From positions 124,001-188,000 of the IMG/VR virus record IMGVR_UViG_3300047157_000197: a DNA stretch of 64,000 nucleotides; one strand, given 5' to 3'. Positions 38,369 through 55,658 of the stretch are shown here, in pieces. The position numbers and the translations under genes are program-made. The first letter of the stretch is position 1; the number at the start of each line of letters is the position of its first letter. Below the pieces are notes generated by a model. It worked only from the letters and a program-made list of their open reading frames with translations. It did no database searches and was not told where the DNA came from.

Positions 38369-38440
38369 TGACCCTTATTTAGAATTAATATAAATTAAAA
38401 AATAATTGACTTTTTATTAGGTTTTCTCATACTTTTTTCG

Positions 38441-38467
38441 TATATTTACTATGTAAATAATTAATAA
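38441..38467 (+). promoter_or_regulatory. Conserved 27-bp early-type promoter element, copy 1
   Basis: TATATTTACTATGTAAATAATTAATAA, identical at 47448 and 48197. Confidence 0.7.
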
Positions 38468-38483
38468 CACTAAAAGATAAAAC

Positions 38484-39086: not shown

Positions 39087-39104
39087 AACTTAAAACTATA
39101 AATT

Positions 39105-39404
39105 ATGATGAATTGTACAGTAAAAGTAATGGCTCAGTATTTCGAAAATTATTCAGATACTAATACACCTTATTGGAAACCAAAAGGTGGACAGGAATTT
39201 CAAATTGTAATTGATTCAGATACTATATTGTATTCTGATGAGTTAAAGAGTCATCTTACAACCTTAGTAGCTGCTCAATCTAATGAACATCATAAGTATG
39301 AGTACATCGAACATGATGTTGAGTTTATTAAACCAATAGTATTGGAAAGTAAGGAGTTGGAGAGTTTAATTCAAACTGAATATGAAAAATGGAATCTGCC
39401 TTAA
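39105..39404 (+). CDS. Hypothetical protein
   Basis: 99-aa ORF; QYFENY...PYWKPKGGQEF, a motif seen in small phage proteins. Confidence 0.55.
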   Translation: MMNCTVKVMAQYFENYSDTNTPYWKPKGGQEFQIVIDSDTILYSDELKSHLTTLVAAQSNEHHKYEYIEHDVEFIKPIVLESKELESLIQTEYEKWNLP

Positions 39405-41398
39405 GAGTATTTGAAGAAATCCAAAAACTTTCAAATCCCTCTAACAAAAAATTAACAGATGTTGATATAATAAAGTTAGATAGGGATTCTGATGTTATAT
39501 TTGTATTGTTACCTGAGTGGGCTCCAAATCTACCTCCTTATAATATAGCAAGATTATCATCGATAATAAATCAAGCTGGTTATAAATCATCATGTCTTGA
39601 TTTAAACATTGAAACTTATCAAGAATCAAAGAAATGGAAAAAAGAATTGGGAATTGACCCATATAATCCAAATAATCTAAATAAGTGGGCAATAAGTGAA
39701 TATGAAAAATATCTGGCACCAACTATAAATCCATTTTTAGATAAATGGATTGAAAAAATAGTAGAAATAAACCCAAAAGTACTAGGGTTTACTCTGTATT
39801 TTTGTAACTCAGGTCCTGTAGATTATGTAGTAAAAAAATTAAGAAAAAGATTACCAAACTCAACTTTTTTTGCTGGTGGACCTGATTTATCACAAATTAA
39901 AGATAAAATCAAAAATGGTGAAATGTACTGTGATGATAACGATACTCCTTATTTTGATTATGGTATTCTTGGAGAATCTGAAATTATATTATTAGATGTA
40001 CTTGAAGAAATAGAACAAGGTGTTGAGCATAAAGGAATGAAAATTCTTACTCAACCTATTAAACAAAGAATTAATCTAAATAACTTTCCATTACCAAATT
40101 ATGAAAACTTTGATTTTTCTAAATATAAAATATCAGATGGAGCATTAACAGAACTAAGTAGAGGTTGTACTGCAAAATGTACATTTTGTTCAGAAACACA
40201 TTTTTGGGAATATAGACAAAGAAATCATACTTCGGTTTTAGATGAAATACAATATCTTTATGATAAAGGAGTACGAATAATATGGTTTGTTGATTCATTA
40301 GTAAATGGAAATCTAAAAGAATTAAAAGAATTTGCACAAGGAGTTATTGATAGAGAATTGGATATAAAATGGCAAGGATATGCAAGATGTGATGGTAGAA
40401 TGGATTATGAGTATTTAAAATTACTTAAAGATTCTGGTTGTCATTCATTATCCTTTGGTGCTGAATCTGCTAGTGATAAAGTTTTAAAAGATATAAACAA
40501 AAGAGTTACTAACTCTGAAATGGAACAAAACTTTAAAGATTGTAATAAATTAGGAATTCATATATTTTCAACATGGATTACATCATTTCCAACAGAAGAT
40601 ACTGAAGATTTTATAGATACTCTTGTTTTTTTAAATAGAAACACAGTAGATTCTATTTTTTTAACACCAGGATTTCAACTTACAGATGATTCAATAGTTG
40701 GCCAAAACTTTGAAAAATTTGGATTAGCACCTTTTAGTTATAATGGTGGTTGGATTAAAGATGATTATTCCTACACAAAACCACATATATTAACAAGAGC
40801 AAAACTATTTGATATATTTGCTAAAGAATGTACAGATATAATTACATGGGATAGACCATTACTTTCAAAAATGTATAATATCTCTTTTAATAATAAATTA
40901 AATAAAAAAATAGATTATTATAGAACTGATATTAATGTATTTAAAAAAGATAATAATAACTTTAAAAATAATTTGTTACTTGAGCCTTTTTATGTATTTC
41001 ACTTAATGTGGAAAATAAAAGGAGGTTTTGAAATAAATTTAAAATTTGATAAAGATATAGATTACCAAGAATATGGAAATGTATTAGAAACAAATTACTG
41101 GTCAGATTTTTATTTTAAAATAGATGATAGTGGTAATTGGGAAACAAAAATAAAATCTAAATTTGAACAAGTACCAAATGCATTTAACTTTATTGATTAT
41201 TCTCAGAGAAAATCTCCCACAATAGAAAGAGCCAGAGTTCACGCAAAACCAAAATGGAAAGATGGCAGTAGAACTGTTGCTGAAATTAAAGAAGGTTTAA
41301 AAACTGAAAATTACTTAAATAAAACAAAAGATTTTACATTTAAGTTTGATTGGGAAGGTAGTGGATATTGGGGAGAAAAAAAGAAAAACTTATTTTAA
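39389..41398 (+). CDS. B12-binding-domain radical SAM protein
   Basis: SRGCTAKCTFC (CxxxCxxC), N-terminal cobalamin-binding-like region (FAGGPD, GESE), FGAESAS. Confidence 0.85.
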   Translation: MESALRVFEEIQKLSNPSNKKLTDVDIIKLDRDSDVIFVLLPEWAPNLPPYNIARLSSIINQAGYKSSCLDLNIETYQESKKWKKELGIDPYNPNNLNKWAISEYEKYLAPTINPFLDKWIEKIVEINPKVLGFTLYFCNSGPVDYVVKKLRKRLPNSTFFAGGPDLSQIKDKIKNGEMYCDDNDTPYFDYGILGESEIILLDVLEEIEQGVEHKGMKILTQPIKQRINLNNFPLPNYENFDFSKYKISDGALTELSRGCTAKCTFCSETHFWEYRQRNHTSVLDEIQYLYDKGVRIIWFVDSLVNGNLKELKEFAQGVIDRELDIKWQGYARCDGRMDYEYLKLLKDSGCHSLSFGAESASDKVLKDINKRVTNSEMEQNFKDCNKLGIHIFSTWITSFPTEDTEDFIDTLVFLNRNTVDSIFLTPGFQLTDDSIVGQNFEKFGLAPFSYNGGWIKDDYSYTKPHILTRAKLFDIFAKECTDIITWDRPLLSKMYNISFNNKLNKKIDYYRTDINVFKKDNNNFKNNLLLEPFYVFHLMWKIKGGFEINLKFDKDIDYQEYGNVLETNYWSDFYFKIDDSGNWETKIKSKFEQVPNAFNFIDYSQRKSPTIERARVHAKPKWKDGSRTVAEIKEGLKTENYLNKTKDFTFKFDWEGSGYWGEKKKNLF

Positions 41399-41430
41399 TT
41401 AGGATATTAAAAATAAATTTCGTATATTTG
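41399..41430 (+). promoter_or_regulatory. Bacteroidetes-type housekeeping promoter (-33/-7)
   Basis: TTAG-N20-TATATTTG; nearly identical to the copy at 55659. Confidence 0.7.
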
Positions 41431-41437
41431 ATTTATT

Positions 41438-41575
41438 ATGAATAAAACAGATTTAACACAACAAGATGGAATGTATTATGTAGGACACTTAATCGATATC
41501 GATGGAAGTGGTTATGTAGATGCAGAAACTGCAGAACTTATCCTATTAGAACATAATGCAGGAGTTACTGAATGA
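41438..41575 (+). CDS. Small hypothetical protein (45 aa), not in the ORF track
   Basis: MNKTDLTQQDGMYYVGHLIDIDGSGYVDAETAELILLEHNAGVTE; its TGA overlaps the ATG of the polymerase gene. Confidence 0.5.
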   Translation: MNKTDLTQQDGMYYVGHLIDIDGSGYVDAETAELILLEHNAGVTE

Positions 41576-42828
41576 TTATAGTAGAAACTAATAAAGAGAA
41601 AGAACAATTTCTCGAATATTGGAATAACGAAGAATCTAAGATTATTCCGATTTGGGAAGATTTGGATAGACATCCTATGACTAATGGGTTGTCATTTTTG
41701 TATGTCCGATTCTCAAACTTAGATTTTATACTACCATTTAATCACAATGATTGTGAAAAGTTAGAAATAGATTTATCAACCTCGAATCAAACAAAGTGGA
41801 TTTGGAACAAAAAAGGATTTCTCCAAACCGATATTAAGATAAATAACCTAAAAGATGTGCAAACTTCTTTATTCTTTGAGAAATTCCAATTATATGATAT
41901 ACAATCGAAATTAGAGGGTTTAACGAGTTTTTACTATCGTTTGGGTATAAGAGATGGTTTGGGTAAGAGTATCTCTATAATGAAGTGGAGTGAAGTACTA
42001 CGAGGTATATGTGATGAATGGGATATAAAACATACAAATCTTTGGGTGGATGAAACGATGATTCCTCTTTTATCAGATATCGAGAGAAAAGGCATTCAAG
42101 TCGATAGGGAAAAATTTTTTGATAGATGGCCAGATAATAAGAAATCTTTATGGTTCTCACATACATTCACCGAGTACAATCCATACACGATTACATCAAG
42201 ACCTTCCAATAGACATTTAGGTATCAATTATGGTGCATTAAACAAATCCGATGGTAGTAGGGGAGTATTCGTTCCAAAGAAAGGAAAGTTGTTCTTACAA
42301 TTCGATTACGATGCATATCATGTTAGGATTATTGGTAAGTTGATTAAATACAAACTACCCGATACTTCGGTTCACCAATGGTTAGCAGACCAATATGGTT
42401 GTGATTATGGGGAATCCAAAGGAAGAACGTTCCGTATCTTATATGGGGGAGTATCCGATGAAGATAGAAAAATACCATTCTTTGATAAAGTAGATAAGTT
42501 TATTTACAAGATGCAAGAAGAGAGTATTCGAAATGGGTATCTACAAACTCCAAAAGGAAGAAAGATTCCTTTAGAGTGGATTGAAAACCCCAACTCTCAA
42601 AAGTTCTTCAACTATATTCTTCAAGCGACTGAAACTGAATTCAATATTGAGGTAATGAATAAGTTGAAAACGTTGCAACTTCCTCTACCTATTCTTTATA
42701 CTTATGATTCATTCTTATTTGAGTTTGATGAAACCGAGGTAGAAACTATTAAATTAGTTAAATCCGTTCTCGAAAGTTATGGATTTCCTGTCAAAGCCGA
42801 TTGGGGGAGTGATTACTCAAAAGTTTAA
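41572..42828 (+). CDS. Short family-A DNA polymerase
   Basis: T.TSRPS, motif A LQFDYDAYHVR, motif B SKGRTFRILYGG, NYILQATET, motif C LYTYDSFLFE. Confidence 0.8.
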   Translation: MIIVETNKEKEQFLEYWNNEESKIIPIWEDLDRHPMTNGLSFLYVRFSNLDFILPFNHNDCEKLEIDLSTSNQTKWIWNKKGFLQTDIKINNLKDVQTSLFFEKFQLYDIQSKLEGLTSFYYRLGIRDGLGKSISIMKWSEVLRGICDEWDIKHTNLWVDETMIPLLSDIERKGIQVDREKFFDRWPDNKKSLWFSHTFTEYNPYTITSRPSNRHLGINYGALNKSDGSRGVFVPKKGKLFLQFDYDAYHVRIIGKLIKYKLPDTSVHQWLADQYGCDYGESKGRTFRILYGGVSDEDRKIPFFDKVDKFIYKMQEESIRNGYLQTPKGRKIPLEWIENPNSQKFFNYILQATETEFNIEVMNKLKTLQLPLPILYTYDSFLFEFDETEVETIKLVKSVLESYGFPVKADWGSDYSKV

Positions 42829-42861
42829 TATTTATATATACATTAAAAAATAAGGAAAATT

Positions 42862-43473
42862 ATGAAATTATTTAAAATATTACTGCTATCATTCATCTTG
42901 TGGGGATGTGAAGCAGAATCAATTGTTGCACAAGAATTAAGACAAGAAGTTATTGTTGAAAATGCAGTATTCAAAGTTTGGTACAATGAAGTAAAAGAAC
43001 AACCAGTAAAATTAGTTTATACATCTACTAATAGACCAAAGAATGTAGATAGAGGTTCAATGAACTTTTATAATGAATCTGATTATCATACATCTGATAA
43101 TGCTGATTATTATGCAAATGTTTGGGATAAAGGACATCTTGCTCCAGCAGCAACTTATTCTGATTCTAAAGAAAATCTACGACAAACATTTTCGTTTTTA
43201 AATTGTGCTTTACAAGACCAGTACCTTAATAGAGGTGAGTGGAGATTATTAGAAGAACAAGAAAGAAAATGGGATGATGAACAAAATTTAAGAATTGTAG
43301 TTGAACTAGTATGGGAAGATGGATATGAAATACTACCAACAGGTGGACATATTCCAACTACAATGATAAAAACAATTTACTTTGAAAACGACGGTACTTG
43401 TAGAAAATTTGTATTTCCAAATCAAAAACCAACTCAAGGTTGGGAAGAATACGAGGTAACTTGTACAGACTAA
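42862..43473 (+). CDS. DNA/RNA non-specific endonuclease (NucA/EndoG family), predicted lipoprotein
   Basis: WDKGHLAPAA, TFSFLNCALQ..LNRGEWRLLE; signal peptide ending in lipobox LWGC. Confidence 0.85.
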   Translation: MKLFKILLLSFILWGCEAESIVAQELRQEVIVENAVFKVWYNEVKEQPVKLVYTSTNRPKNVDRGSMNFYNESDYHTSDNADYYANVWDKGHLAPAATYSDSKENLRQTFSFLNCALQDQYLNRGEWRLLEEQERKWDDEQNLRIVVELVWEDGYEILPTGGHIPTTMIKTIYFENDGTCRKFVFPNQKPTQGWEEYEVTCTD

Positions 43474-43500
43474 TATTTATAATAAATAGGAGATTAAATT

Positions 43501-43905
43501 ATGGCTTTCAACTTTCCTGATGGAGCATCAAACGGAGATACACATACAGCAAGTAATGGTACAGTTTATATTTACAATGGAACAACATGGTTAGTTGATT
43601 CAGTAACCACTACAACAAACTTCGATACAAAATATCTAAATACAAATGGTGATGGAATTTTAAGTGGTTCTGTGACTGACCAACTTCCAAGTGGAGTAAT
43701 TAGTGGAAGTTCTCAAATTACAATTACTGAATCACAAATTTCAGATTTATCACATACAACTTTACCAAGTGGATTAGTTAGTGGTTCATCTCAGTTAGAT
43801 GGATTTGTAAGTTCATCTTCAACAAATATTATAGAAGTAATGACATCTGCATCTTATGATGCAATTACACCAGTTAGTGGTACTTTATATATTATACAAG
43901 GATAA
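43501..43905 (+). CDS. Small virion fibre/decoration protein
   Basis: MAFNFP...YIYNGTTW; SGSSQ repeats; ends YDAITPVSGTLYII. Confidence 0.65.
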   Translation: MAFNFPDGASNGDTHTASNGTVYIYNGTTWLVDSVTTTTNFDTKYLNTNGDGILSGSVTDQLPSGVISGSSQITITESQISDLSHTTLPSGLVSGSSQLDGFVSSSSTNIIEVMTSASYDAITPVSGTLYIIQG

Positions 43906-43907
43906 AA

Positions 43908-44813
43908 ATGGACAGAAGGATTAATACTGCACAAGGCATTACTTTCAATAATGTTTCGGTAGATGATGTTTATTATAATAACGAACACATCTGGCCAACA
44001 GGTAGTGCTTCAACTCCTTGGTCACCAAGTACTGATATTACAACAGTTGCTTGGATTGATGCATCCGATTCTTCAAATTATTCAACAAGTGGAACAACCC
44101 TAACTTCGGTAACTGATAAAGCAGGAACTTATACAATGACAGTTGGTGGAACTCCAACTACTGGTAATACTCAAAATGGATTAAATGTATTTGATTTTAA
44201 TGGTAGTAATGAGTATTTACAAAGTACAACGTATTCTATCCAAGCATCATCTGGTAATCATTGGGCAATAGGTGTATTTAGATTTGAAGGAACAAATAGT
44301 ACTCAAGATTCTATTTGGAGTTATGAAACCAATCAAATTGGTTTTGGTGGGGAAAAAAGAGATTATGCATTGAGTAGTGGTAATTCCTCAAACTCATGGC
44401 CAGGTGAATTAGATTTAGATGGTTTGGCTTTTAATAGAATTAGTTCTACAATTGGTAATTTAGAATCTTGGAATTCAAAAAGTTTAACAAGAAACCAATA
44501 TCATATCGTTTCGTGTTGGTTTAATAAAACAGGAAACCAAATTGGTGTTAGAGTAGATGGTTCAAATGCATTTACACCAGTTAATGATTACGATAACGAA
44601 ATACAAACAAGACAACAATTAAGATTAATGAGAAACAGGTCATCACAAGAATTAGATGGTAAATTAGCAGAGTTCTTTGCAGTAGCAAATATACCTGGTA
44701 CAAGTGGTACTGATTTAACTCATTTAACAAAAGCAGAAGGATATCTTGCACACAAATGGGGATTAGAAAGTTCTCTACCAAGTTCACATCCTTACAAAAC
44801 ATCAGCACCTTAA
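43908..44813 (+). CDS. Virion protein with ConA/LamG-like lectin domain
   Basis: WIDASDSS...DKAG, NGLNVFDFNG, EGYLAHKWGL..LP..HPYK. Confidence 0.6.
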   Translation: MDRRINTAQGITFNNVSVDDVYYNNEHIWPTGSASTPWSPSTDITTVAWIDASDSSNYSTSGTTLTSVTDKAGTYTMTVGGTPTTGNTQNGLNVFDFNGSNEYLQSTTYSIQASSGNHWAIGVFRFEGTNSTQDSIWSYETNQIGFGGEKRDYALSSGNSSNSWPGELDLDGLAFNRISSTIGNLESWNSKSLTRNQYHIVSCWFNKTGNQIGVRVDGSNAFTPVNDYDNEIQTRQQLRLMRNRSSQELDGKLAEFFAVANIPGTSGTDLTHLTKAEGYLAHKWGLESSLPSSHPYKTSAP

Positions 44814-44828
44814 TATTTATAGTATAGT

Positions 44829-46865
44829 ATGGATTATAAAAAAGTAATAGATAAGTTAGTAAGAGAACTCTCATATAGGGTAGGAATTCCCAATATAGAA
44901 AATAAGGACCATCAATCAATCATGTCTGAAATTCTTTCAGAGTGGGGTGAGTATGATGTAAAAGAAAAAATCTTTGAATTTCTTACTGAAAAAGATGAAA
45001 AATTTAATGCAACAAGTAAAAAGAGTGGTGAAACTGTAACATTCCAATCAAAAAAAGCAAGAGAGGATGCAATAGAAGCAGGAACCCACAAACTTATTGA
45101 TAAAAAAGATGATGATACTCAAACTACACAAGGTAGTGCTTTAAAAAGTAAATCTTATCAAAAAGTAGTTGATAAAGAAGAAGAAACTCGGAAAAAAATT
45201 GATGGTGAAGATGATAATAACCAACAACCTGAAAACGATGAAGAAAGAAAAGAAGAACTGAGAAGTAAAGATGAAGAATTAGTAAATACTCAACTTTTCT
45301 TATATGAAGGTGATGACCAAGATGCGGGAGGTCTTGGAACTCCTGAATCAAGAACTGGTGAAACAGTAACAGTTTATGCTGGTACAAGAATAAAACAACT
45401 CATGGCAGATGGAAAAATGGATTATAAAACTGCCAGAGAACAAGTAAGACAAGAATTACTTGAACACACAAAATCCAAAAAAGGTGGTAAAAAGGCACTC
45501 TTAACAAAAGAATGGGTAGAGTCAGGCCTAAGATGTTTAGATTGGATTAATGAAAATTATGATATAGATGAGGTTGAAAATTTGGCATGGGATACACCTG
45601 AAGGAAATGAATTAGTAGGTTCAACTGGTCATGGAACTTCTGCTGATATGTTTATAAAAACAAAAGATGGAAGAACAATTGGTATTTCTCTTAAAAAAGA
45701 TTTTAAAGTTTTTGTTTTCAATGGTGGATATGATAAAAATATTGAAAAATTTGCAGAAAGTTTGGGATTATCGTTGGATGAATTACCAGATGAACTTCAA
45801 TATAAAGGAAACCCTAAATCATATAAATCAAAAAGAGAAAAAATATTTGAAGAAAGATTTGAGTTATTCAATAATGATGATGTAAAGAAAAAAGTTTGTG
45901 AAAATATAGAAAAGGCAAAATCAAGTGATGAAGGATATATAGAAGTATTTGCTAAAAGAACTTTAAAAAATAAAAAGAGATTAAATTTAATTGCAAAAAA
46001 TGCAGGTAAAGATATTTCTGATATAACTTGTGATGATTTTTATAACTTTGTTTTAAATAAACCAAATAAAACCAATGACGATAAAGCAGTTATTTATGCT
46101 TTTGCACAATATGATTCTGAAATTGAAAAGGGAACTAATGGATTATATTCAGAAACAAGAAAATTAGATAAACAACAGAGAGATGCTTTTTATAGTTTTG
46201 TAACAACACAACCTTACGAGGACAAATTTAAAGAAGTAGTTGCAGAACATACTCATATTGATGATGTTTTGTTTGGAACAAAGGGAGACCAATTAGATAA
46301 ACTTGAAGTTGTATATGGAGAACCACCAGCGGGTGAATCCATGAAAAAAGAAGCTTTAGTTGCTATGTTTGATTTGGGAGATTTATATGAAGAATATGAA
46401 AATGAAAAAGACCCACAGAAAAAACAAGAACTTCAAGATGAAATAAAAAGAAAGTATAAGGAAAAAATGATAATTGATAAAGAATCAAATCCACCGAGAA
46501 TTGGTGTATTGATTGCTAATCCTGTTCCTCCACCAGATACTTCAATTCAACCTCTATTCACTTTAGGAGTTAGAGCTAAGGGTATTACCGCGGCACCTGC
46601 ATTAGAAATGGGACAAACTGCTTTTGGTGGATTGTGTTTTAAAAATGGAACTGTTGATATAAACAAATGGCCTGATGAAGATAGAAAGAAATTTGTTGAT
46701 AGCGAAGTTAAGAGAATACAAGAAGATTTTGATGATGATTTCATAGATTATACAAACAAAAGTGAAGTTGAAGAATTAATATCTTATTTAGAAAGATTAG
46801 ATAAATTAAAATCTGTACCGAAAACTAAAAGGTTAATGGATTTAATAAAATCAAAACAACAATAA
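44829..46865 (+). CDS. Late protein with restriction-endonuclease-like (PD-(D/E)XK) core
   Basis: TSADMFIKTKDGRTIGISLKK; acidic linker; late motif at 44813. Confidence 0.45.
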   Translation: MDYKKVIDKLVRELSYRVGIPNIENKDHQSIMSEILSEWGEYDVKEKIFEFLTEKDEKFNATSKKSGETVTFQSKKAREDAIEAGTHKLIDKKDDDTQTTQGSALKSKSYQKVVDKEEETRKKIDGEDDNNQQPENDEERKEELRSKDEELVNTQLFLYEGDDQDAGGLGTPESRTGETVTVYAGTRIKQLMADGKMDYKTAREQVRQELLEHTKSKKGGKKALLTKEWVESGLRCLDWINENYDIDEVENLAWDTPEGNELVGSTGHGTSADMFIKTKDGRTIGISLKKDFKVFVFNGGYDKNIEKFAESLGLSLDELPDELQYKGNPKSYKSKREKIFEERFELFNNDDVKKKVCENIEKAKSSDEGYIEVFAKRTLKNKKRLNLIAKNAGKDISDITCDDFYNFVLNKPNKTNDDKAVIYAFAQYDSEIEKGTNGLYSETRKLDKQQRDAFYSFVTTQPYEDKFKEVVAEHTHIDDVLFGTKGDQLDKLEVVYGEPPAGESMKKEALVAMFDLGDLYEEYENEKDPQKKQELQDEIKRKYKEKMIIDKESNPPRIGVLIANPVPPPDTSIQPLFTLGVRAKGITAAPALEMGQTAFGGLCFKNGTVDINKWPDEDRKKFVDSEVKRIQEDFDDDFIDYTNKSEVEELISYLERLDKLKSVPKTKRLMDLIKSKQQ

Positions 46866-46967: not shown

Positions 46968-47369
46968 ATGCAAACCCAGTTACTTTGTACTTTTACTACA
47001 AAAGAAGAACTTAAAACTACCTTACAGCTTATAAGAGAAACCTATCATATAGTGTACAACTATATTTATGTTCTTCAAAATAAGGGTAATTTAGAGGAGT
47101 TGTTCGTTACCTATAATATAGATACTTCTATTAAACCAGAAACACCATTAAAGGATACTATCTTAGTACACCGAAAAAAACAATCTAATACTCTTTATAC
47201 AATCAATGCACTTAACGAATTAGTTAAAGAAGAAAATGGTGGTGTATTAGATAAAAAATTCACAATTGATTGGAATAAATTCAAAAACTCAATTATCGTT
47301 ACCAATGTAGAAGGTACAAAGAAAATTTCTACACGAATCTTCGAGGTAATAGAATTCAACAAAAAATAA
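46968..47369 (+). CDS. Conserved phage hypothetical protein
   Basis: MQTQLLCTF...VHRKKQSNTLYTINALN. Confidence 0.6.
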   Translation: MQTQLLCTFTTKEELKTTLQLIRETYHIVYNYIYVLQNKGNLEELFVTYNIDTSIKPETPLKDTILVHRKKQSNTLYTINALNELVKEENGGVLDKKFTIDWNKFKNSIIVTNVEGTKKISTRIFEVIEFNKK

Positions 47370-47447
47370 AATTATTCTTATTTAGAATCAATATAAACTG
47401 GTAAAATAAATCACATTTTACTTGACTCGTATTGCTTTTTTTTCACT

Positions 47448-47474
47448 ATATTTACTATGTAAATAATTAATAAT
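47448..47474 (+). promoter_or_regulatory. Conserved 27-bp early-type promoter element, copy 2
   Basis: Identical to 38441-38467. Confidence 0.7.
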
Positions 47475-47492
47475 ATAAAACGTTAAAAAATT

Positions 47493-47681
47493 ATGACCGT
47501 AAGTAAAATAAAAGAAATCGTAAAAGAAGTATTAAGTATCAATTTAGTAGATTGGTTATCTAAATCTCAAATTGAACTGATAGAAATAGAAGTAGAAGTT
47601 CATGAAATTGCTGAAAAAGATGTTTGTGAATTTATCTTTGATAAATCAGTAATATTCCAATGTTCATTAATGGATGATTAA
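47493..47681 (+). CDS. Hypothetical protein
   Basis: 62-aa ORF directly after the promoter element, A-rich leader. Confidence 0.5.
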   Translation: MTVSKIKEIVKEVLSINLVDWLSKSQIELIEIEVEVHEIAEKDVCEFIFDKSVIFQCSLMDD

Positions 47682-47705
47682 TATAAACCTATAAAACATT
47701 AAATT

Positions 47706-47918
47706 ATGACAATAGTAAATTTAGTAAAAAAAATAAATGATTTAGAATACTTAACCAAGAAACAATATTCTTGGTTAGCTAGTAACGATTCTAACTTTGA
47801 TAGTTTGGATTTTAGTTACATAGGTGATTTCAGCAAGTATGGTGATTACTTAAATTTACAAGTTTATTCTGAACACGAACATCATGATTTTCAATATCGA
47901 ATGGAATGTGGAATTTAA
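47706..47918 (+). CDS. Hypothetical protein
   Basis: 70-aa ORF, A-rich leader. Confidence 0.5.
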   Translation: MTIVNLVKKINDLEYLTKKQYSWLASNDSNFDSLDFSYIGDFSKYGDYLNLQVYSEHEHHDFQYRMECGI

Positions 47919-47943
47919 AATATAAATCTTAAAATATAAAAAT

Positions 47944-48144
47944 ATGTCTAAATTAAAACTAAAACAATATATGTTCACCTTTGAAGGTGGAGGTTGGAAT
48001 ACCGTATGGGCCAAGACCCTACGAGGTGCTAAGAAATTGGCAGTTAAGGAATATGAATATTCCGATACGTTGAATGTGAGATTAGATTCAGTTCACTTGG
48101 CAACTGAAAGTGGTTTGAAAACAGCAATGAGTTTATTTTATTAA
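47944..48144 (+). CDS. Hypothetical protein
   Basis: 66-aa ORF; FEGGGWNTVWA. Confidence 0.55.
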   Translation: MSKLKLKQYMFTFEGGGWNTVWAKTLRGAKKLAVKEYEYSDTLNVRLDSVHLATESGLKTAMSLFY

Positions 48145-48196
48145 AATTTTAACATAAATTTAACACTTTTTATTAGGAATTGTGGTTTATTTTTCG

Positions 48197-48223
48197 TATA
48201 TTTACTATGTAAATAATTAATAA
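48197..48223 (+). promoter_or_regulatory. Conserved 27-bp early-type promoter element, copy 3
   Basis: Identical to 38441-38467. Confidence 0.7.
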
Positions 48224-48239
48224 CATAAACTTTAAAACT

Positions 48240-48548
48240 ATGAGTAAATTTGAAATCTGGCTTGATGAGGTCAACACTAAGAGAAAAAAGTATTGGGATG
48301 ATAAATATACCTACAAACCCTACACACCCCTAACAATCAAAAAAGGACAAAAGTATGTAAAGATTATGGATGAAACCTCAGTATGGGCGTTTGTTTCCAT
48401 GTGGGAAGGTGTGTTCCAAGGAACGTTAGTTTGTAAAGGAGATTTACTAAAACCAGCTTCTTGGAAAACTCCGGCTAAACATGCAAGAGGAAACATCTTT
48501 GATGGAACTGATAAGTGGGAATTCTTTGGACCAAAATACTTAAAATAA
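48240..48548 (+). CDS. Conserved phage early protein
   Basis: GDLLKPASWKTPAKHARGNI motif, widespread in large myoviruses. Confidence 0.65.
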   Translation: MSKFEIWLDEVNTKRKKYWDDKYTYKPYTPLTIKKGQKYVKIMDETSVWAFVSMWEGVFQGTLVCKGDLLKPASWKTPAKHARGNIFDGTDKWEFFGPKYLK

Positions 48549-48553
48549 AAAAT

Positions 48554-48877
48554 ATGAAGATACCTAAAATAACAAAACCATGGAGTAAAGAGATGTATGA
48601 ATACAACGATTACGTTGCAGAATTCATGAAGATGGAAATTGAAACTAAGATTAACGAAGCTGAAAACAATGATGATTTCAATACCCTAAACGAACTAATG
48701 GTTCTTTGTGGTGGTATTAAATATGGAGATAGTTACACACTTGGTGAACTATGGGAAGATTGTTTGAACGAATTACAGAATGTTCAAAACTATTGGTTAC
48801 ATGAAGAATTCCCATATGCTGTATCAAAAGGATGGGTTGATGATGTTGAATTAAAATTCGTTGGATATGACAAATAG
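48554..48877 (+). CDS. Hypothetical protein
   Basis: ATG at 48554 is in frame with ORF 48515..48877. Confidence 0.55.
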   Translation: MKIPKITKPWSKEMYEYNDYVAEFMKMEIETKINEAENNDDFNTLNELMVLCGGIKYGDSYTLGELWEDCLNELQNVQNYWLHEEFPYAVSKGWVDDVELKFVGYDK

Positions 48878-49058
48878 TTGGTATTATACAGAGATGGGTT
48901 CTCGTAATAAAAAGACTGGTAAGTTATCTTACTACCAAGTAAAAGTAACTGATTACAAGATTGATGATTGTAATTGTAAGGCAAGAGAATTTCGTTCTTA
49001 TTCACCTTGTAAACACATGAAAAGATTACACGAAAAATTAACACACTTAAGTATATAA
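48867..49058 (+). CDS. SWIM-type zinc-finger protein
   Basis: CNCKAREFRSYSPCKHM (CxC...CxH). Confidence 0.7.
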   Translation: MTNSWYYTEMGSRNKKTGKLSYYQVKVTDYKIDDCNCKAREFRSYSPCKHMKRLHEKLTHLSI

Positions 49059-49059
49059 A

Positions 49060-49854
49060 ATGCCAGAAATATCCGAAGTACGACTTACATCTGAGTGGAT
49101 TACTCAAAAAAATAAAAGGAGAACAATTACAGAAGTAGAATATCTTTCCTCTAATAAACTAAAAATGGTAGAGGAAATTGATGTAATAGGAAAAACTTTA
49201 TCCGCAACTAGTAGAGGAAAAGAATTAAGACTTGAATTCGATTTTGAACCAGTTGTTATTACATTAGGTATGAGTGGTGGATTTAAAAACTACAAAGAAC
49301 GAAGTGATGATTCAGATAAACATTGGAAACATTCTCATATCAGATTTAAGATGTCAGATGGTGATTGGTTTACTTGGTCTGATATTCGTAGATTTGGTAA
49401 ATCACTTGGTGATACTTGGGGAACGAAACGAGGACCAGATATTTTTGATGAAGAAGAAGAATTTAGAAAGAACATTGTAAATAATATAGAACATAGAGAT
49501 TTTAATAAACCTGCACATGAAGTTTTAATGAACCAACAATGGTTTAATGGAATTGGAAACTATCTTAGAGCAGAGATTCTTGGTAAGTGGGATGTAAATC
49601 CTTTTCAACCAATGAGAAATATTATAAATACACCATTTTTAGACCATTTAATAGAACAAGTACATTGGTCATATCGATTAGGTGGTGGACAATTATATAC
49701 TTGGATGAATGAAAATGAATCTGCAATTGATTCCAATTTAACTTGGAATGATTGGATGCAATTTTATGGTAAACAAGAATCAATGAAAGATAAACAAAAA
49801 AGAACCTTTTGGTTTAATAAAAAATATTCAAAAAATTTGGATATAACAAAATAA
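49060..49854 (+). CDS. Fpg/Nei-family DNA glycosylase/AP lyase, NEIL1-like (zinc-less finger)
   Basis: N-terminal MPE, RGKEL, LGMSG, DIRRFG, H2TH FNGIGNYLRAEIL; Cys-free C-terminal DKQKRTFWF. Confidence 0.9.
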   Translation: MPEISEVRLTSEWITQKNKRRTITEVEYLSSNKLKMVEEIDVIGKTLSATSRGKELRLEFDFEPVVITLGMSGGFKNYKERSDDSDKHWKHSHIRFKMSDGDWFTWSDIRRFGKSLGDTWGTKRGPDIFDEEEEFRKNIVNNIEHRDFNKPAHEVLMNQQWFNGIGNYLRAEILGKWDVNPFQPMRNIINTPFLDHLIEQVHWSYRLGGGQLYTWMNENESAIDSNLTWNDWMQFYGKQESMKDKQKRTFWFNKKYSKNLDITK

Positions 49855-49869
49855 TTTTGTATATTAGTA
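49835..49869 (+). repeat. 35-bp direct repeat, left (promoter-like)
   Basis: ATTTGGATATAACAAAATAATTTTGTATATTAGTA; 33/35 identical to 51813-51847. Confidence 0.75.
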
Positions 49870-49928
49870 GCTTCAAATGTGAAAGTTTTACATTAATTAC
49901 TCCAAATTTAAAAAAAAATACAAATAAA

Positions 49929-49960
49929 TTTGGAATTGTAAAAATAATTTCGTATATTTG
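49929..49960 (+). promoter_or_regulatory. Bacteroidetes-type promoter
   Basis: TTTG(49929)-N20-TATATTTG(49953). Confidence 0.75.
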
Positions 49961-49979
49961 TATAAATAAATTAAGAAAA

Positions 49980-51707
49980 TTGAGATTTAACAATCTAAAC
50001 GCCCTAGCAGAAGCAAAGTACGCAACGGCCGTAGGAAAGTTGGACAACCCTACACAACAGAAGGTCCAGTCATTTATTAACGAACAAATCGAAATCGAAA
50101 TGAAGTCGATGAGTGACGTGTTATCTGCAACACAACAACAAAATCAGAAACTACAATTCAATCCATTAAAGTTATGGTTTGAAGGTATAACCAACATTCC
50201 ACTAGGAGTGACCGATATCTACTTCGATATTGAGAAGGTTAAGAACAAGGGATATGAAATCCACATCAGACAAGTTGGACCAGGAACAACACTTGAGACA
50301 ATTAACGGTAATTTACTTGACTCCAAAACGGTTGAATCACAAGTATTCATTCGTAAGGATAACAAATCAGGCTCAATCTATGGGTCTGGTATTGGTACAC
50401 AGTCCCAATACACAAGTAAACTTATCTACAAAGTTAAAACCAAAGGAATGGATTCATTCCATTGTTGGGATGTATTAACCGGTAAAACTTGGTTTGATGA
50501 TAAATTATCTCACGAGAGTGGGGTAATTATCGAGATGTTTGTACCATACTCTCAAAAAATGGTTAGTTATGAAAGATTTATCGATGATTTAAGATGGATG
50601 ATTTCTTTCTACGATAACAAAAACCTTGTTGGGAACAATAGTAGAACCTATCATATTGAAGCTCAAGGTTTCGATACTGGTGGTAATGATAGATTATCCT
50701 TACCAATTCACCCAACTGCAACCAATTGGGTACAACCAGATGGTAAGATTACAAAGATTCCATCATACACACACCTTACTTTAAATAAGAAAGTTTTTAA
50801 GGAACTTCCTATAATTGTTCCACATGATGATGGTGACAAGACAGTTTTACTTACAAACTTTAAGTTTGGTAAAAGAGCTGATAATTACAGAAAATCAGCT
50901 GGAGGTGAACAATGGAAAATCCCATCAAAGATAACTGGTGATATTCCTCAACTAATTGTTTACTATAAAGATTCTAAACAAATAGCGTTTACATTACCAC
51001 TTAGAGGAAACTCTGGTTTAACATCCCTTAACAATGTTACTTTAGAATGTGAAATAGCAAAGGATGATTTAAGACCCTTCTTTACTTCAACTGATAAGTT
51101 CGGTGATATTCAAGGAGTACTTAAAGCAACTTTATTCAATGAGTTAAGACAGTATCTGTTAGATAGATATCCAGATAATGATTTACTAGAAAGAGCAGTT
51201 CAACTATGGTTGTATGCTGTAATCGTTAATGATTTTGGTGGTAAGAATAACGCTAACAATCTTAGAAATTATTATGGTTGGGGATTCTTAAATAATATGA
51301 CTCCACTCAAAAGAACCAAATTCGTAATAATGGAATATGATTCAGATGAAGGTAGACAGGATTTTAGAATCTTTCTCGTTGGTGATACCAATAATAAGAT
51401 TACTAAGTTTACTAAGAGTTGTATTATTGAAGTAAAGAGAAGTGATTTCAATAGAAGAGATACTAATCAATCAATGGGTTACATTACAACGACAGTTAAC
51501 GCAACACAAATTGTTGGAGTTTCATTAAACATCAAAACAAAGAATGATAAATTATTTAAAGAATTCTTTGCTAAAGCGAATGGAACAGGTCAGTTAACAA
51601 GTGATATCAAGTATGATTTGATGGAAGTTGCTGATTGGGGATTCGAGGACGATGTTAAAGATTCGTTTACTTCTGAGGCTTTGGTTGAAAAAAACAGTAA
51701 GAAATAA
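49980..51707 (+). CDS. Divergent GHKL (MORC/Hsp90-like) ATPase fused to a C-terminal PD-(D/E)XK nuclease domain
   Basis: LWFEGITN (N box), IRQVGPG (G1), SGSIYGSGIG (G2), SGVIIEM (G3); C-terminal RQDFRIF...IIEVKR....DTNQSMGY. Start probably TTG 49980 (after the promoter) or ATG 50100. Confidence 0.55.
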   Translation: MRFNNLNALAEAKYATAVGKLDNPTQQKVQSFINEQIEIEMKSMSDVLSATQQQNQKLQFNPLKLWFEGITNIPLGVTDIYFDIEKVKNKGYEIHIRQVGPGTTLETINGNLLDSKTVESQVFIRKDNKSGSIYGSGIGTQSQYTSKLIYKVKTKGMDSFHCWDVLTGKTWFDDKLSHESGVIIEMFVPYSQKMVSYERFIDDLRWMISFYDNKNLVGNNSRTYHIEAQGFDTGGNDRLSLPIHPTATNWVQPDGKITKIPSYTHLTLNKKVFKELPIIVPHDDGDKTVLLTNFKFGKRADNYRKSAGGEQWKIPSKITGDIPQLIVYYKDSKQIAFTLPLRGNSGLTSLNNVTLECEIAKDDLRPFFTSTDKFGDIQGVLKATLFNELRQYLLDRYPDNDLLERAVQLWLYAVIVNDFGGKNNANNLRNYYGWGFLNNMTPLKRTKFVIMEYDSDEGRQDFRIFLVGDTNNKITKFTKSCIIEVKRSDFNRRDTNQSMGYITTTVNATQIVGVSLNIKTKNDKLFKEFFAKANGTGQLTSDIKYDLMEVADWGFEDDVKDSFTSEALVEKNSKK

Positions 51708-51721
51708 CATAAGTTATAAAA

Positions 51722-51771
51722 GAGATAGAAACGCATTCCGAAAAAAAGTAAGAATGCGTAATCTCAATTTT
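51722..51771 (+). terminator. Hairpin/terminator after the GHKL-nuclease gene
   Basis: GAGAT..ACGCATTC-loop-GAATGCGT.ATCTC followed by AATTTT. Confidence 0.55.
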
Positions 51772-51812
51772 AAAAGAAAATTAAAAACAACTAAATAAAT
51801 AAATTATAAAAT

Positions 51813-51847
51813 ATTTGGATATAATAAAATAATTTTGTATATTTGTA
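51813..51847 (+). promoter_or_regulatory. Bacteroidetes-type promoter; also the right 35-bp direct repeat
   Basis: TTTG(51814)-N20-TATATTTG(51838). Confidence 0.75.
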
Positions 51848-51864
51848 TAAATAAAATTTAAATA

Positions 51865-52293
51865 ATGAATAAGATAATAAAAAAAGAAAGTAAAAACCAC
51901 AAATTTAACCCAATTAAAGTAGAACCCCAATATGATGAGGTTATTGCATATGATAATCCAAAAGTGGTTGAGGAAATGGAAAAACAATGGCCTGAAATGA
52001 CGGCAGAGTTTAAAAGAATTATGTTTACACAATATGAATTATTTTGTTTAAAACAATCTAACTATGGACCAGATAATATTTCGGTTGGTAGTAATTTAGA
52101 AACAGAACAAGAAAAGAAAGTATCTCTTACAGGTCTTTGGTTTAGAATGAATGATAAAATTCAAAGATTAAAACAATTAGTTGTATTAGGTAAACAAGAT
52201 AATATAGGTGAATCATGTGAAGATACCTTCCAAGATTTATCAGTATATGGAATCATTGCTCAACTCGTTTCAAGTGGAAAATGGGCTAAGTAA
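51865..52293 (+). CDS. Nucleotide-modification-associated domain 1 (DUF1599/Nmad1-like) protein
   Basis: KQSNYGPDNI...RMNDKIQRLKQL...ESCEDTFQDLSVYGII. Confidence 0.7.
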   Translation: MNKIIKKESKNHKFNPIKVEPQYDEVIAYDNPKVVEEMEKQWPEMTAEFKRIMFTQYELFCLKQSNYGPDNISVGSNLETEQEKKVSLTGLWFRMNDKIQRLKQLVVLGKQDNIGESCEDTFQDLSVYGIIAQLVSSGKWAK

Positions 52294-52429: not shown

Positions 52430-53233
52430 ATGGCTTTAGACATTAACGCAATCAGAAGTAGACTGAACAAACTACAAAACACACAAAGAAAATCAGATTC
52501 ACTATGGAAACCAACTCCAGGTAAACATCAAGTAAGGGTAGTTCCTTACAAATTCGATAAGGATAATCCATTTATCGAATTGTATTTTCACTACAACATT
52601 AACAACAAAACTTATTTATCACCACAATCATTTGGTAGACCAGACCCTATTGTAGAGTTTGCGGATAAACTAAAAAGAATGGGAGATAAAGAAGATTGGA
52701 AAGCAGCAAAGGCTATGGAGCCTAAGTTGAGAACTTTCGTACCTGTTGTTGTAAGAGGTGAAGAAGGCGAAGGAGTTCGTTTTTGGGGATTTGGTAAAAC
52801 AGTATATCAAGAAATTCTTGGGTATATTGCTGATCCAGATTATGGAGACATTACAGACCCAACAAGTGGTAGAGATTTAACAATCGAGTATAAATCAGCA
52901 GAAGAAGCTGGAACTACTTATCCAACTACTACTATTAGAGTTAAACCAAATGAAACACCAGTGAGTGAAGATGCTACAAAAGCAACTGCATTTATTGAAA
53001 ATCAAACTGAAATTACAGATTTATATTCTGAATTATCTTATGATGAATTAAAATCAGTATTAGAGGGATGGTTAAATCCAAGTGGTGAAGGAAAGGAAGA
53101 AACTGTATCTCAGTCTACTTTATCTCAAAGTAAACCAGTACAATCTACACCAACTACACCAAAAGCAGAAGTCAACGCTCCTCAGAAAACTGATGATGTT
53201 GCAGCTGCATTTGATGACTTATTTAACAACTAA
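52430..53233 (+). CDS. Single-stranded DNA-binding protein (T4 gp32-like)
   Basis: WKPTPGKHQVRVVP, FWGFGKTVYQEI, DITDPTSGRDL, acidic tail AFDDLFNN; precedes the recombinase. Confidence 0.8.
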   Translation: MALDINAIRSRLNKLQNTQRKSDSLWKPTPGKHQVRVVPYKFDKDNPFIELYFHYNINNKTYLSPQSFGRPDPIVEFADKLKRMGDKEDWKAAKAMEPKLRTFVPVVVRGEEGEGVRFWGFGKTVYQEILGYIADPDYGDITDPTSGRDLTIEYKSAEEAGTTYPTTTIRVKPNETPVSEDATKATAFIENQTEITDLYSELSYDELKSVLEGWLNPSGEGKEETVSQSTLSQSKPVQSTPTTPKAEVNAPQKTDDVAAAFDDLFNN

Positions 53234-54377: not shown

Positions 54378-54605
54378 ATGAATAAAAAGTTATATACAAT
54401 GTTAAAAAGTAGTGCTGAGGCTGATAAAGCCAAAGCTCTACTTTCTTTAGACCTTCTTGGAAACAAATCAGTTGGTATCGGCGACCATTCTACTGAAGAT
54501 TTCTACAAAAATGCAGAGGAAGCTCTGATTAAATTAGTAGATGCAGATGATAGATTAAATGCATTAGAAGATTATTTTGAAGAAGATTTAAAAGAAGTTT
54601 TATGA
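54378..54605 (+). CDS. Conserved hypothetical protein
   Basis: 75 aa; VGIGDHST motif. Confidence 0.6.
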   Translation: MNKKLYTMLKSSAEADKAKALLSLDLLGNKSVGIGDHSTEDFYKNAEEALIKLVDADDRLNALEDYFEEDLKEVL

Positions 54606-55658
54606 AAGAACTATACAAGAACATATTAGAGTCAGTTGAAACTGATAGAACTCAAAATATCGATAAACACAAGAATTCTCGTGTATTAATTATTGATGGG
54701 TTAAATACATTTATTAGATGTTGGACATCTATACCAACTATGAATGATGATGGAGACCATGTTGCAGGAGTAACTGGTAGTCCTACGTTCTATTGGATAT
54801 GCAATCAGACAAACTCAACCGACTCGAGTTGTTGTTGTTTTTGATGGAAAAAATGGTTCACAGAGTAGAAAAAAAATATATCCTGAATATAAGGCTGGAA
54901 GAGATAAAAACAAACTTAGAGTAAATCGTCAGTACGCTGATATGATGAACGATGAGGATGAAAGAGAATCTATGAAACGTCAGTATGTTTGGTTAATGGA
55001 AATGATGCATGAACTTCCACTTACTACTATGATATACGATGGTGTAGAAGCAGATGATATTATGGCATATATTCCAACTAAAATTTTAAAAGAAGGAGAA
55101 CAAGCTGTAGTTATGTCAACTGATAAAGATTTTTTACAATTAGTTGATGAAGATACAATTGTTTGGTCACCTACTAAAAAGAAAATTTATAATACAAATC
55201 GAATCAAAGAAGAATTTGGTTTAGACCCAAAAAATTTATTACTTTATAGAGTACTTGATGGTGATAAATCAGATAATATACCAGGTGTATATGGATGTGG
55301 TATTAAAACACTTCTAAAGAGGTTTCCAGAACTTACAGATGATAATGAACTATCCGTTGATAATTTACTTGAACTGGCAGAACAAAAAAAGGAAGAAACT
55401 AAAGGTAAGATTAAATTATACAATGATATCTTAGAATCTAAAAAACAGATTATCATGAATGAGAAATTAATGCAATTAAAAGATGTTGATATCTCAGGTC
55501 AAATAAAAATGAATGTTTTAGATAGATTTAATGAAGATATCAAACCATTAAATAAAATAGATTTCCTGAAAGTTTGTTTGAAATATAAAGTTACAGATAA
55601 ATTTGGAGACCTGAATTCTTGGTTGAAAGATACTTTTGGTAATTTAATAACTGATTAA
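54602..55658 (+). CDS. 5'-3' exonuclease/RNase H (FEN/PolI N-terminal family), about 351 aa, split by one extra base near 54779
   Basis: LIIDGLNTFIR in the first ORF; removing one base gives VTGVLRSIGYAI...VVFDGK...YKAGR, joining EADD, STDKDFLQL and GDKSDNIPGV. Confidence 0.85.

Follow-up and report, generated by a model that had tools for sequence, protein, structure and literature searches.

We analyzed a 64,000-nucleotide stretch of DNA (hereafter "the window") from the IMG/VR virus record IMGVR_UViG_3300047157_000197, covering bases 124,001–188,000 of a 275,970-bp phage genome that is rated 100% complete by CheckV, has a G+C content of ~31–32%, and holds 183 of its 184 open reading frames (ORFs) of at least 150 amino acids (aa) on one strand. 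Tail fibre and tail sheath genes in the left part of the window identify this phage as a myovirus, and the right part encodes a gp32-type single-stranded DNA-binding protein, a UvsX/RecA recombinase, a flap endonuclease (FEN), a DnaB-type helicase and a ribonucleotide reductase. Its RecA/UvsX is only distantly related to those of deposited phages, the best match being a Microcystis phage at just 54% identity. Between genes for an Fpg/Nei-like glycosylase and a DUF1599 protein, ahead of gp32, lies the subject of this analysis, a gene in which a reading of the letters alone (hereafter "the original prediction") had seen a GHKL ATPase fused to a nuclease. Structural modeling indicates that this gene encodes a Bergerat-fold ATPase, an S5-type transducer and a C-terminal RecB/NucS-like PD-(D/E)xK nuclease in a single polypeptide, and a comparison of related phages shows it to be accessory and exchangeable (Table 1).

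Table 1. Features of the GHKL-nuclease locus, with positions in the window; domains are as predicted and motifs are named by likeness.
Feature	Positions	Strand	Remarks
GHKL-S5-nuclease coding sequence, 575 aa	49980–51707	+	TTG start 49980, TAA stop 51705–51707; identical product called elsewhere
GHKL (Bergerat-fold) ATPase domain, residues ~40–232	50097–50675	+	E68, N72, Q98-x-G-x-G, S-x-x-G135-x-G137
GHKL key codons	E68 50181–50183; N72 50193–50195; Q98-x-G-x-G 50271–50285; S-x-x-G135-x-G137 50373–50390	+	
S5-type transducer (middle) domain, residues ~233–399	50676–51176	+	structural alignments reach residue 399
PD-(D/E)xK nuclease domain, residues ~400–575	51177–51704	+	E452, R459-x-D461, E484-x-K486, Q497-x-x-x-Y501
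Nuclease key codons	R459-x-D461 51354–51362; E484-x-K486 51429–51437; Q497-x-x-x-Y501 51468–51482	+	
Promoter-like motif, first copy, 29 nt, TTGGATATAAcAAAATAATTTTGTATATT	49837–49865	+	overlaps stop codon of upstream gene
Promoter-like motif, second part, 28 nt, AATAATTTcGTATATTTGTATAAATAAA	49943–49970	+	ends 10 nt before TTG start
Direct repeat of promoter-like motif, before DUF1599	51815–51855	+	brackets GHKL-nuclease gene together with upstream copies
Terminator-like hairpin	51722–51765	+	15 nt past stop; 8-bp stem ACGCATTC/GAATGCGT in 5-bp outer stem, then AATTTT
Hypervariable island	47370–51864	+	between 133-aa ORF 46968–47369 and DUF1599 (51865–52293), then gp32

The N-terminal 40 residues are conserved at the protein level in homologs of 67–70% identity, so that the TTG start is credible, and independent gene calls on other public contigs arrive at an identical protein of 575 aa (P0001). 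Searching 1.84 billion representative proteins exhaustively with phmmer (E ≤ 0.001) delineated a family of 29 clusters with full-length members of 510–580 aa, none of them named and none with a meaningful Pfam domain, which is known so far solely from metagenomes and viral contigs. No further full-length members came from a profile search of a 5.8-billion-protein set, no match from tblastn and megablast against 50,697 deposited phage genomes, and no relative from a scan of 185,579 prokaryote genomes with narrow search patterns. Profile methods were equally silent: the 575-aa protein has zero matches in Pfam (E ≤ 10), PHROG, PADLOC (Shedu and Tiamat models included) and NCBIfam at permissive thresholds, and none of 28 family members matches the Pfam HATPase_c_3, Morc6_S5 or DUF4263 (PF14082) profiles (E ≤ 1). 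Likewise, PDB sequences searched with whole-family, ATPase-domain and nuclease-domain profiles returned noise (MtrB, ferritin) and a sub-threshold match to the GyrB lid only.

Structure prediction was more informative. A single-sequence AlphaFold2 model was unusable (pLDDT, the predicted local distance difference test, 31.6), and we therefore used throughout a model built from an alignment of 28 family sequences (22–70% identity to the query), which reached a pLDDT of 85.8 and a predicted template-modeling score of 0.77. In this model residues 57–399 form a GHKL domain with the Bergerat alpha/beta sandwich followed by an S5-type transducer, and residues from about 400 to 560 form a restriction-endonuclease-like alpha-beta-beta-beta-alpha-beta core that carries the D...(D/E)xK residues. 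Foldseek searches against the PDB recovered Hsp90, TRAP1, GRP94, SMCHD1, MutL LN40 and MORC3 (E ~1e-9 to 1e-8), and structural alignments to SMCHD1, MORC2, MORC3, MutL LN40 and Topo VI-B each span 260–290 residues, extending through residue 399 and thus over the middle region that the original prediction had judged compatible with an S5-like domain. The best ATPase matches are MORC and SMCHD1 rather than MutL. As in MORC and paraMORC proteins, the alignments place an S5 domain 2-like transducer directly after the GHKL domain; within it G297-K298, Q334, N351, K373 and Y397 are family-invariant, and residues 305–318 form a variable loop modeled at low confidence. The nearest models in AFDB and the ESM Atlas are HATPase_c_3 proteins with varied effector domains (SIR2, HD-CE, HEPN-like), and two unnamed AFDB models of 550–560 aa align over the whole protein length.

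All of the motifs on which the original prediction had relied are present (E68-G-I-T-N72, Q98-V-G-P-G102, S132-I-Y-G135-S-G137-I-G, S180-G-V-I-I, D461, E484-V-K486 and Q497-S-M-G-Y501), and its reading of them as a degenerate Bergerat-fold ATPase with a Mrr/NucS-like nuclease at the C-terminus is borne out by the folds of both ends in the model. Counting over the alignment rows that cover each position, E68, N72, G135, G137, D461, E484, K486, Q497 and Y501 are invariant across the family, as are, or nearly so, E404, R429, E452 and R459; judged from the alignment, this conservation goes far beyond chance. Motif I (E-x-x-x-N) retains both E68 and N72 in 26 of 26 covering rows and sits on the first long helix (residues 63–71 of the model). 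Motif III reads S/G132-x-x-G135-x-G137 in a Gly-rich loop that precedes a helix, and a sub-threshold profile alignment (E about 1) places it on the GyrB lid motif. On the nuclease side, the signature E452...R-x-D461...E484-x-K486...Q497-x-x-x-Y501 corresponds to the RecB-like E-D-ExK-QxxxY pattern.

Motif II is where the family departs from the canon. In canonical GHKL ATPases, the motif II Asp hydrogen-bonds the N6 of adenine. Here the motif is canonically placed, at the end of the strand formed by residues 91–99 and ahead of the helix 105–111, and its glycines G100 and G102 are largely kept, but the D-x-G-x-G pattern itself is absent, with a Gln at position 98 in 24 of 25 members and a Ser in one in place of the adenine-contacting Asp. 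The Gln that the original prediction had noticed in place of the Asp is family-wide, and may translate into an altered nucleotide preference. A pocket repurposed for another ligand, as also suggested there, finds no support in these data, the catalytic Glu, the Mg-binding Asn and the lid glycines all being kept.

Some natural variation was seen within the coding sequence. The codon 50995–50997 encodes Pro340, a residue near-invariant in the family and part of the motif FTLPLRG, and the cluster representative P0001 has a Gln there; in three of four seawater metatranscriptomes a C-to-A change is found at 50998, a minor natural polymorphism around this conserved stretch. A second case comes from two other contigs, L010 and L008, which are near-identical over ~15 kb and share 17 ORFs, 15 of them 100% identical at the protein level. 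Their largest difference is the GHKL-nuclease homolog (L010 6122–7780, L008 7881–9569), with an in-frame 10-aa deletion (TNLQTINSNL) directly after Q-x-G-x-G and one G-to-V change. This is probably a natural variant with a crippled ATPase, which fits a dispensable gene.

The three-part design is already known in bacteria, and what is novel here lies at the sequence level and in the gene being phage-encoded. The paraMORC3 proteins were defined by Iyer, Abhiman and Aravind as a GHKL domain, an S5 domain and a C-terminal RecB-like E-D-ExK nuclease, and many of their genes stand alone, in Proteobacteria and Bacteroidetes (PMC2292703). On account of their DUF4263 nuclease they were subsequently assigned to Shedu type I-D (10.1101/2023.08.10.552793), and VcSduA from Vibrio cholerae is a validated one-gene defence, whose anti-phage activity is lost when either the ATPase Glu or the nuclease Lys is mutated (PMC12137116). 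By published descriptions, the phage protein shares with paraMORC3/GHKL-Shedu the organization into a single three-part polypeptide of similar size with an Hsp90/MORC-type middle domain, the E-D-ExK nuclease (E452, D461 and E484-x-K486 being invariant or nearly so), the often stand-alone gene, and a sporadic, laterally mobile distribution. Positions equivalent to the Glu and Lys required in VcSduA are E68 and K486, both invariant in the phage family.

Nonetheless, the phage family lacks any HATPase_c_3, DUF4263/SduA_C or PADLOC Shedu match, and carries a Gln in motif II where paraMORC proteins and VcSduA have canonical motifs I–IV. Shedu chains are missing from the 50 best structural matches and from the profile search of PDB sequences, and language-model leads from the phage protein to SduA_C clusters are weak (scores 0.71–0.77). 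The setting differs as well, with GHKL-Shedu found in bacterial defence islands and the present gene in a large marine myovirus, its family occurring solely on phage or viral contigs and in metagenomes, with none found in cellular genomes. Given the failed sequence-defined membership tests and the divergent motif II, we count the protein as a phage-borne variant and not as a member of GHKL-Shedu.

Another relevant comparison is Tiamat (TmtA, of the NO VEIN/sacsin-like proteins), also a single-gene GHL ATPase with a C-terminal PD-(D/E)xK nuclease (10.64898/2026.09.30.754977). Tiamat nicks duplex DNA, cleaves single-stranded DNA and hydrolyses ATP; its ATPase activity is needed for defence, and its nuclease is predicted to replace the usual C-terminal dimerisation domain (10.64898/2026.09.30.754977). 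It has no S5 fold, however, its middle region being a DUF3684 segment of typically >1000 residues (TPR-like repeats, Fold B and a metalloprotease-like fold) and its nuclease a DUF3883, as opposed to a 575-aa protein with a classical S5 transducer. The combination of Hsp90-like ATPase, DUF3684 and DUF3883 that defines Tiamat was not found in the phage protein by PADLOC or Pfam. MORC and SMCHD1 modules, in turn, keep the motif II Asp and have no fused nuclease, and their Pfam profiles (HATPase_c_3 and Morc6_S5) miss the phage protein. As for the nuclease, the N-terminal DNA-binding domain of NucS/EndoMS is absent, no PCNA/beta-clamp motif was identified, and the additional E452 and Q497xxxY501, which set the phage protein apart from NucS and Mrr, resemble RecB-family nucleases; a sequence-profile search of solved nucleases gave no match. 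We also considered a topoisomerase or MutL identity and rejected it, as Toprim, 5Y-CAP and MutL C-terminal domains are all lacking and the C-terminus is a PD-(D/E)xK nuclease instead.

To evaluate how the gene is distributed among relatives, we compared 80 viral contigs with a gp32 at least 81% identical to that of the window, in which the order ORF-46968, variable gap, DUF1599, gp32, UvsX is conserved. The GHKL-nuclease gene lies near gp32 in just three of these 80 close relatives, one of the three being the same phage. Across 46 related viral contigs the gap measures 0.76–6.5 kb and holds 44 ORF clusters, mostly singletons, as expected of a hypervariable island. In the present phage it contains small ORFs, the glycosylase gene (49060–49854) and the GHKL-nuclease gene; alternative cargo elsewhere includes Eco57I-type and N6/N4 DNA methylases, ThyA, a Hint-domain protein, a 2OG-Fe oxygenase and an FG-GAP protein. 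Sequence identity to five syntenic relatives is 72–89% for the neighbours (ORF-46968, DUF1599, gp32, UvsX, FEN and DnaB), vs. 42–67% for the GHKL-nuclease. Between two of the syntenic relatives, the ratio of non-synonymous to synonymous substitutions (dN/dS) is 0.21 for the GHKL-nuclease vs. 0.06–0.13 for its neighbours (dS being saturated), which points to purifying selection.

The gene also moves. A 70%-identical copy in one related group lies beside homologs of genome positions ~250 and 256–263 kb, and a 47%-identical copy in another beside homologs of 203–209 kb, so that at least three genome positions are occupied among related phages. Within the gp32 locus, one relative (L022) has a gp32 97% identical to that of the window and, between DUF1599 and gp32, an allele only 26% identical to ours, while another (L078) carries yet another allele at 27% identity; divergent alleles have thus entered one hotspot independently. 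Apart from the backbone genes of the gp32 locus, no neighbouring ORF of at least 40 aa is conserved across 12 contexts, and no cognate methylase is adjacent here or conserved beside the homologs in these contexts, in agreement with the original prediction. We conclude that the gene stands alone, without a methylase or immunity partner. The visible excess of C-ending codons pointed out earlier was likewise confirmed: the frequency of C at third codon positions (C3) is 0.148, twice the average over the genome (0.074, sd 0.026; z 2.9) and exceeded in only two of 183 ORFs, and the third-position G+C (GC3) is 0.282 against 0.167 for the genome. Taken together, the GHKL-nuclease gene is accessory and exchangeable, and dispensable for the phage lineage.

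Several observations concern the surroundings of the gene and of its homologs. The Fpg/Nei-type glycosylase immediately upstream (Pfam N-terminal domain, E 1.4e-16) is found in 0 of the 46 related islands, and a functional link with it was rejected given that it is unique to this phage; a link with DUF1599 was rejected too, this being a universal backbone gene present with or without the GHKL-nuclease. An AAA-family ATPase gene outside the window (C1:250139–251359) is as atypical in codon usage as the GHKL-nuclease (GC3 0.283, C3 0.143). It is 75 kb away in this genome, and in another phage its 89%-identical homolog (L004:2740–3957, L005:1732–2949) lies directly upstream of the 70%-identical GHKL-nuclease homolog; a functional link between the two is possible. 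In a further relative the same island holds a 743-aa protein with no Pfam match followed by an Eco57I-type N6-adenine DNA methylase (L039:2941–6401), which may be a phage-borne restriction-modification pair in the same hotspot.

The gene had also been credited with its own promoter and hairpin. The hairpin holds up well, its fold energy of -13.4 kcal/mol standing against -3.7 ± 1.8 for shuffles (z -5.3); the stem ACGCATTC/GAATGCGT contains G+C and is listed as an inverted repeat. For the promoter, a generic sigma-70 scan yielded sites no more numerous than in shuffled sequence, and the claim therefore rests on a repeated motif and on the ends of RNA contigs. The first upstream motif (TTGGATATAAcAAAATAATTTTGTATATT), which has a sigma-70-like reading (TGGATA-16-TATATT) also listed by the consensus scan, recurs with one mismatch at 51815–51843, ahead of the DUF1599 gene. 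A 19-mer core, GTATATTTGTATAAATAAA, is found exactly at 49952–49970 and 51837–51855, and jointly the two upstream motifs reproduce the single promoter-like block before DUF1599. This 19-mer has six copies in the genome at ≤2 mismatches, the others (C1:190846, 193436, 243337 and 261330) lying just upstream of several genes, and six matches in the window at ≤3 mismatches vs. 0.29 expected. A Bacteroidota host, suggested by a TAnnTTTG element inside the promoter-like motif, was dropped since this element is not enriched upstream of genes (observed/expected 0.86).

Four seawater metatranscriptomes, available as assembled contigs rather than reads and without strand information, contain gene-length contigs spanning 49910–51724, 49885–51632 and 49997–51677. 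Starts at 49885–49910 fall just 3' of the first promoter-like motif and the ends at 51632–51724, so that both gene borders are marked. Word depth, 6–20 across the GHKL-nuclease gene, is only 0–7 on the glycosylase gene before it and reaches 177 on gp32 (52430–53233), the most deeply covered gene of this 5-kb stretch, and such uneven depth between adjacent genes argues for RNA rather than contaminating DNA. The GHKL-nuclease gene is thus transcribed in the sea. DNA near-identical to the window was detected in at least 14 seawater or marine metagenome runs, and close relatives of its gp32 are encoded on >589 viral contigs; by this contig count and the metatranscriptome depth, the phage group is abundant and active in the sea. 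Loose ends among the RNA contigs show the GTATATTTGTATAAATAAA motif joined to different downstream genes in co-occurring variants, which suggests a mobile regulatory cassette.

This arrangement is reminiscent of the PeSLs of T4-type phages, composite promoter-terminator cassettes that flank shuffled genes (PMC2839356, PMC4122927). As there, a hyperplastic region, a stem-loop after the gene and repeated promoter-like motifs bracketing it occur together, and recombination between such PeSL-like motifs would produce the differing order of the GHKL-nuclease gene and DUF1599 among relatives. Framed by a promoter-like motif and a hairpin, the gene passes between phages as one unit. The motif here is nevertheless specific to this phage group, with six genome copies only, and recombination at it is inferred.

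What might such a gene do? On balance, and with slightly better than even confidence, we favour a single-polypeptide, nucleotide-gated DNA clamp nuclease serving genome conflict, as a sequence-orphan counterpart of paraMORC3/GHKL-Shedu. What tips the balance in this reading of model and analogy is that the gene sits in a hotspot, that its alleles turn over, that no partner gene accompanies it, and that its architecture matches one validated in defence. Its targets would be co-infecting or resident phages, mobile elements or host DNA, as opposed to a core replication function. By what is established for GHL ATPases (an overview is given in 10.64898/2026.09.30.754977), the protein would form a dimer joined through its C-terminal nuclease domains. 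Nucleotide binding would bring the N-terminal ATPase domains together and thereby clamp DNA in the S5-lined lumen, and cutting by the paired nuclease domains would be triggered by clamp closure or by hydrolysis. The same clamp logic was proposed for VcSduA (PMC12137116) and Tiamat (10.64898/2026.09.30.754977). The original prediction of a new single-gene conflict system is thus right in its structural part and plausible as to conflict, which the hypervariable island, the allele exchange and the three or more genome positions support indirectly; a wholly new kind of system it is not, the paraMORC3/GHKL-Shedu architecture being known.

Several points speak against a conflict nuclease. With Gln98 in place of the canonical adenine-binding Asp, the pocket may bind ATP, another nucleotide or nothing. 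The absence of any sequence-level link to HATPase_c_3, DUF4263/SduA_C, or the Shedu and Tiamat models means that the likeness to GHKL-Shedu may be convergent. Four long related contigs contain no family member, yet they are only 31–59% complete, so that loss from whole genomes is not proven. Lastly, most homologs found sit in the replication/recombination module beside gp32 and UvsX, and two contexts adjoin DNA-repair enzymes (Fpg/Nei here, and UvdE in contig L097), all of which fits a role in repair.

That role would be one of an accessory DNA-repair or recombination factor, in which a MutL-like ATPase and a NucS-like endonuclease process mismatches, lesions or branched intermediates together with gp32, UvsX, FEN and nearby glycosylases or UV endonucleases. 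It would account for a gene placed directly upstream of gp32-UvsX-FEN-DnaB in six related phages, for the glycosylase next to it here and the UvdE gene that shares 14 nt with the start of a distant homolog, for a dN/dS well below 1, and for the resemblances to NucS and MutL. We nonetheless consider it unlikely. A repair factor of the module would hardly be missing from the gp32 locus in most close relatives, located at unrelated genome positions in others, or replaced by very divergent alleles in near-identical backbones; the Fpg and UvdE neighbours were each encountered only once and do not accompany the gene elsewhere, the regions examined showed no MutS-like partner, and the ATPase resembles MORC and SMCHD1 more than MutL.

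T4 EndoII and EndoIV offer a precedent for phage nucleases that cut host DNA. By analogy, the protein could be a host-takeover nuclease that cuts the host chromosome early, for shut-off and to feed nucleotide salvage, phage DNA being spared by base modification. Protection of the phage by a base-modification locus goes back to the original prediction, and nothing in these data supports it directly. In favour of host takeover, the protein retains its active-site residues, transcription of its gene is seen in situ, and the window encodes a ribonucleotide reductase, a divergent thymidylate-synthase-like protein, the DUF1599 protein (a nucleotide-modification-associated domain) and a non-specific endonuclease. 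However, modification genes are hinted at (DUF1599, thymidylate-synthase-like, radical-SAM) with no chemistry established for this phage, most close relatives keep the nucleotide-metabolism genes without the GHKL-nuclease, no linkage to any modification gene is conserved outside the shared backbone, and an ATP-gated clamp appears unusually elaborate for bulk degradation, all of which makes host takeover quite improbable.

Least credible, and to our mind very improbable, is a counter-defence function like that of rIIA, in which a GHKL ATPase with a variable C-terminus acts against host or prophage exclusion and the nuclease fold binds rather than cuts: rIIA proteins are indeed phage GHKL ATPases with variable C-termini (PMC7824862), rIIA is among the viral structural matches (E about 1e-7) and Pfam detects no second GHKL protein in the genome, be it a topoisomerase II ATPase or an HATPase_c_3 protein of rIIA type (whole-genome scan including PF13589), but no PHROG or Pfam match to rIIA-type families exists even at E ≤ 1, structural scores are no better than to any other GHKL protein, the invariant catalytic residues argue for catalysis, and no rIIB-like partner is conserved beside the gene.

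Returning to the conflict nuclease, GHKL-nuclease fusions (paraMORC3/GHKL-Shedu, Tiamat) have only recently been shown to protect bacteria from phages as single-gene effectors, and the way in which their ATPase governs the nuclease is still being worked out. The present family has the same design, has been found only in abundant marine phages, is invisible to profile methods, and shows a systematic change at the adenine contact. If the conflict role is true, this immune architecture would be known from viruses as well as from bacteria, and the ~29 clusters provide a compact (575 aa), naturally diverse set for dissecting both the clamp-nuclease mechanism and its nucleotide specificity. One may speculate further, although we hold this to be doubtful, that large marine phages carry fast-exchanging Shedu-like clamp nucleases as offensive or exclusion weapons, with the Gln-for-Asp change switching the gate to a non-ATP ligand. 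Such a ligand could be GTP, a modified nucleotide or a signalling nucleotide, for example, and would restrict firing of the nuclease to a particular state of the infection; if true, phages would own a mirror image of a bacterial immune protein that responds to a new input logic. The locus itself clearly exemplifies a hypervariable hotspot set within a replication module, in a phage group that is uncultured yet widespread.

Elsewhere in the window, ranges 37616–46865 and 62572–63270 hold a PhyH-type dioxygenase, a 669-aa radical-SAM protein, a 418-aa fragment-like family A DNA polymerase ORF, a non-specific Endonuclease_NS and the divergent thymidylate-synthase-like protein (E 1e-6 only); with DUF1599 (51865–52293), these unusual enzymes may represent the base-modification locus that the original prediction had in mind. 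Finally, the flap-endonuclease gene is split into two ORFs (54602–54844 and 54942–55658) by a 1-nt insertion at ~54781, an extra A in GGTAGTCC. It is a single 347-aa ORF both in a contig of the same phage from another sample (L014) and in a relative (L002), and the split is either an assembly error or a genuine frameshift.

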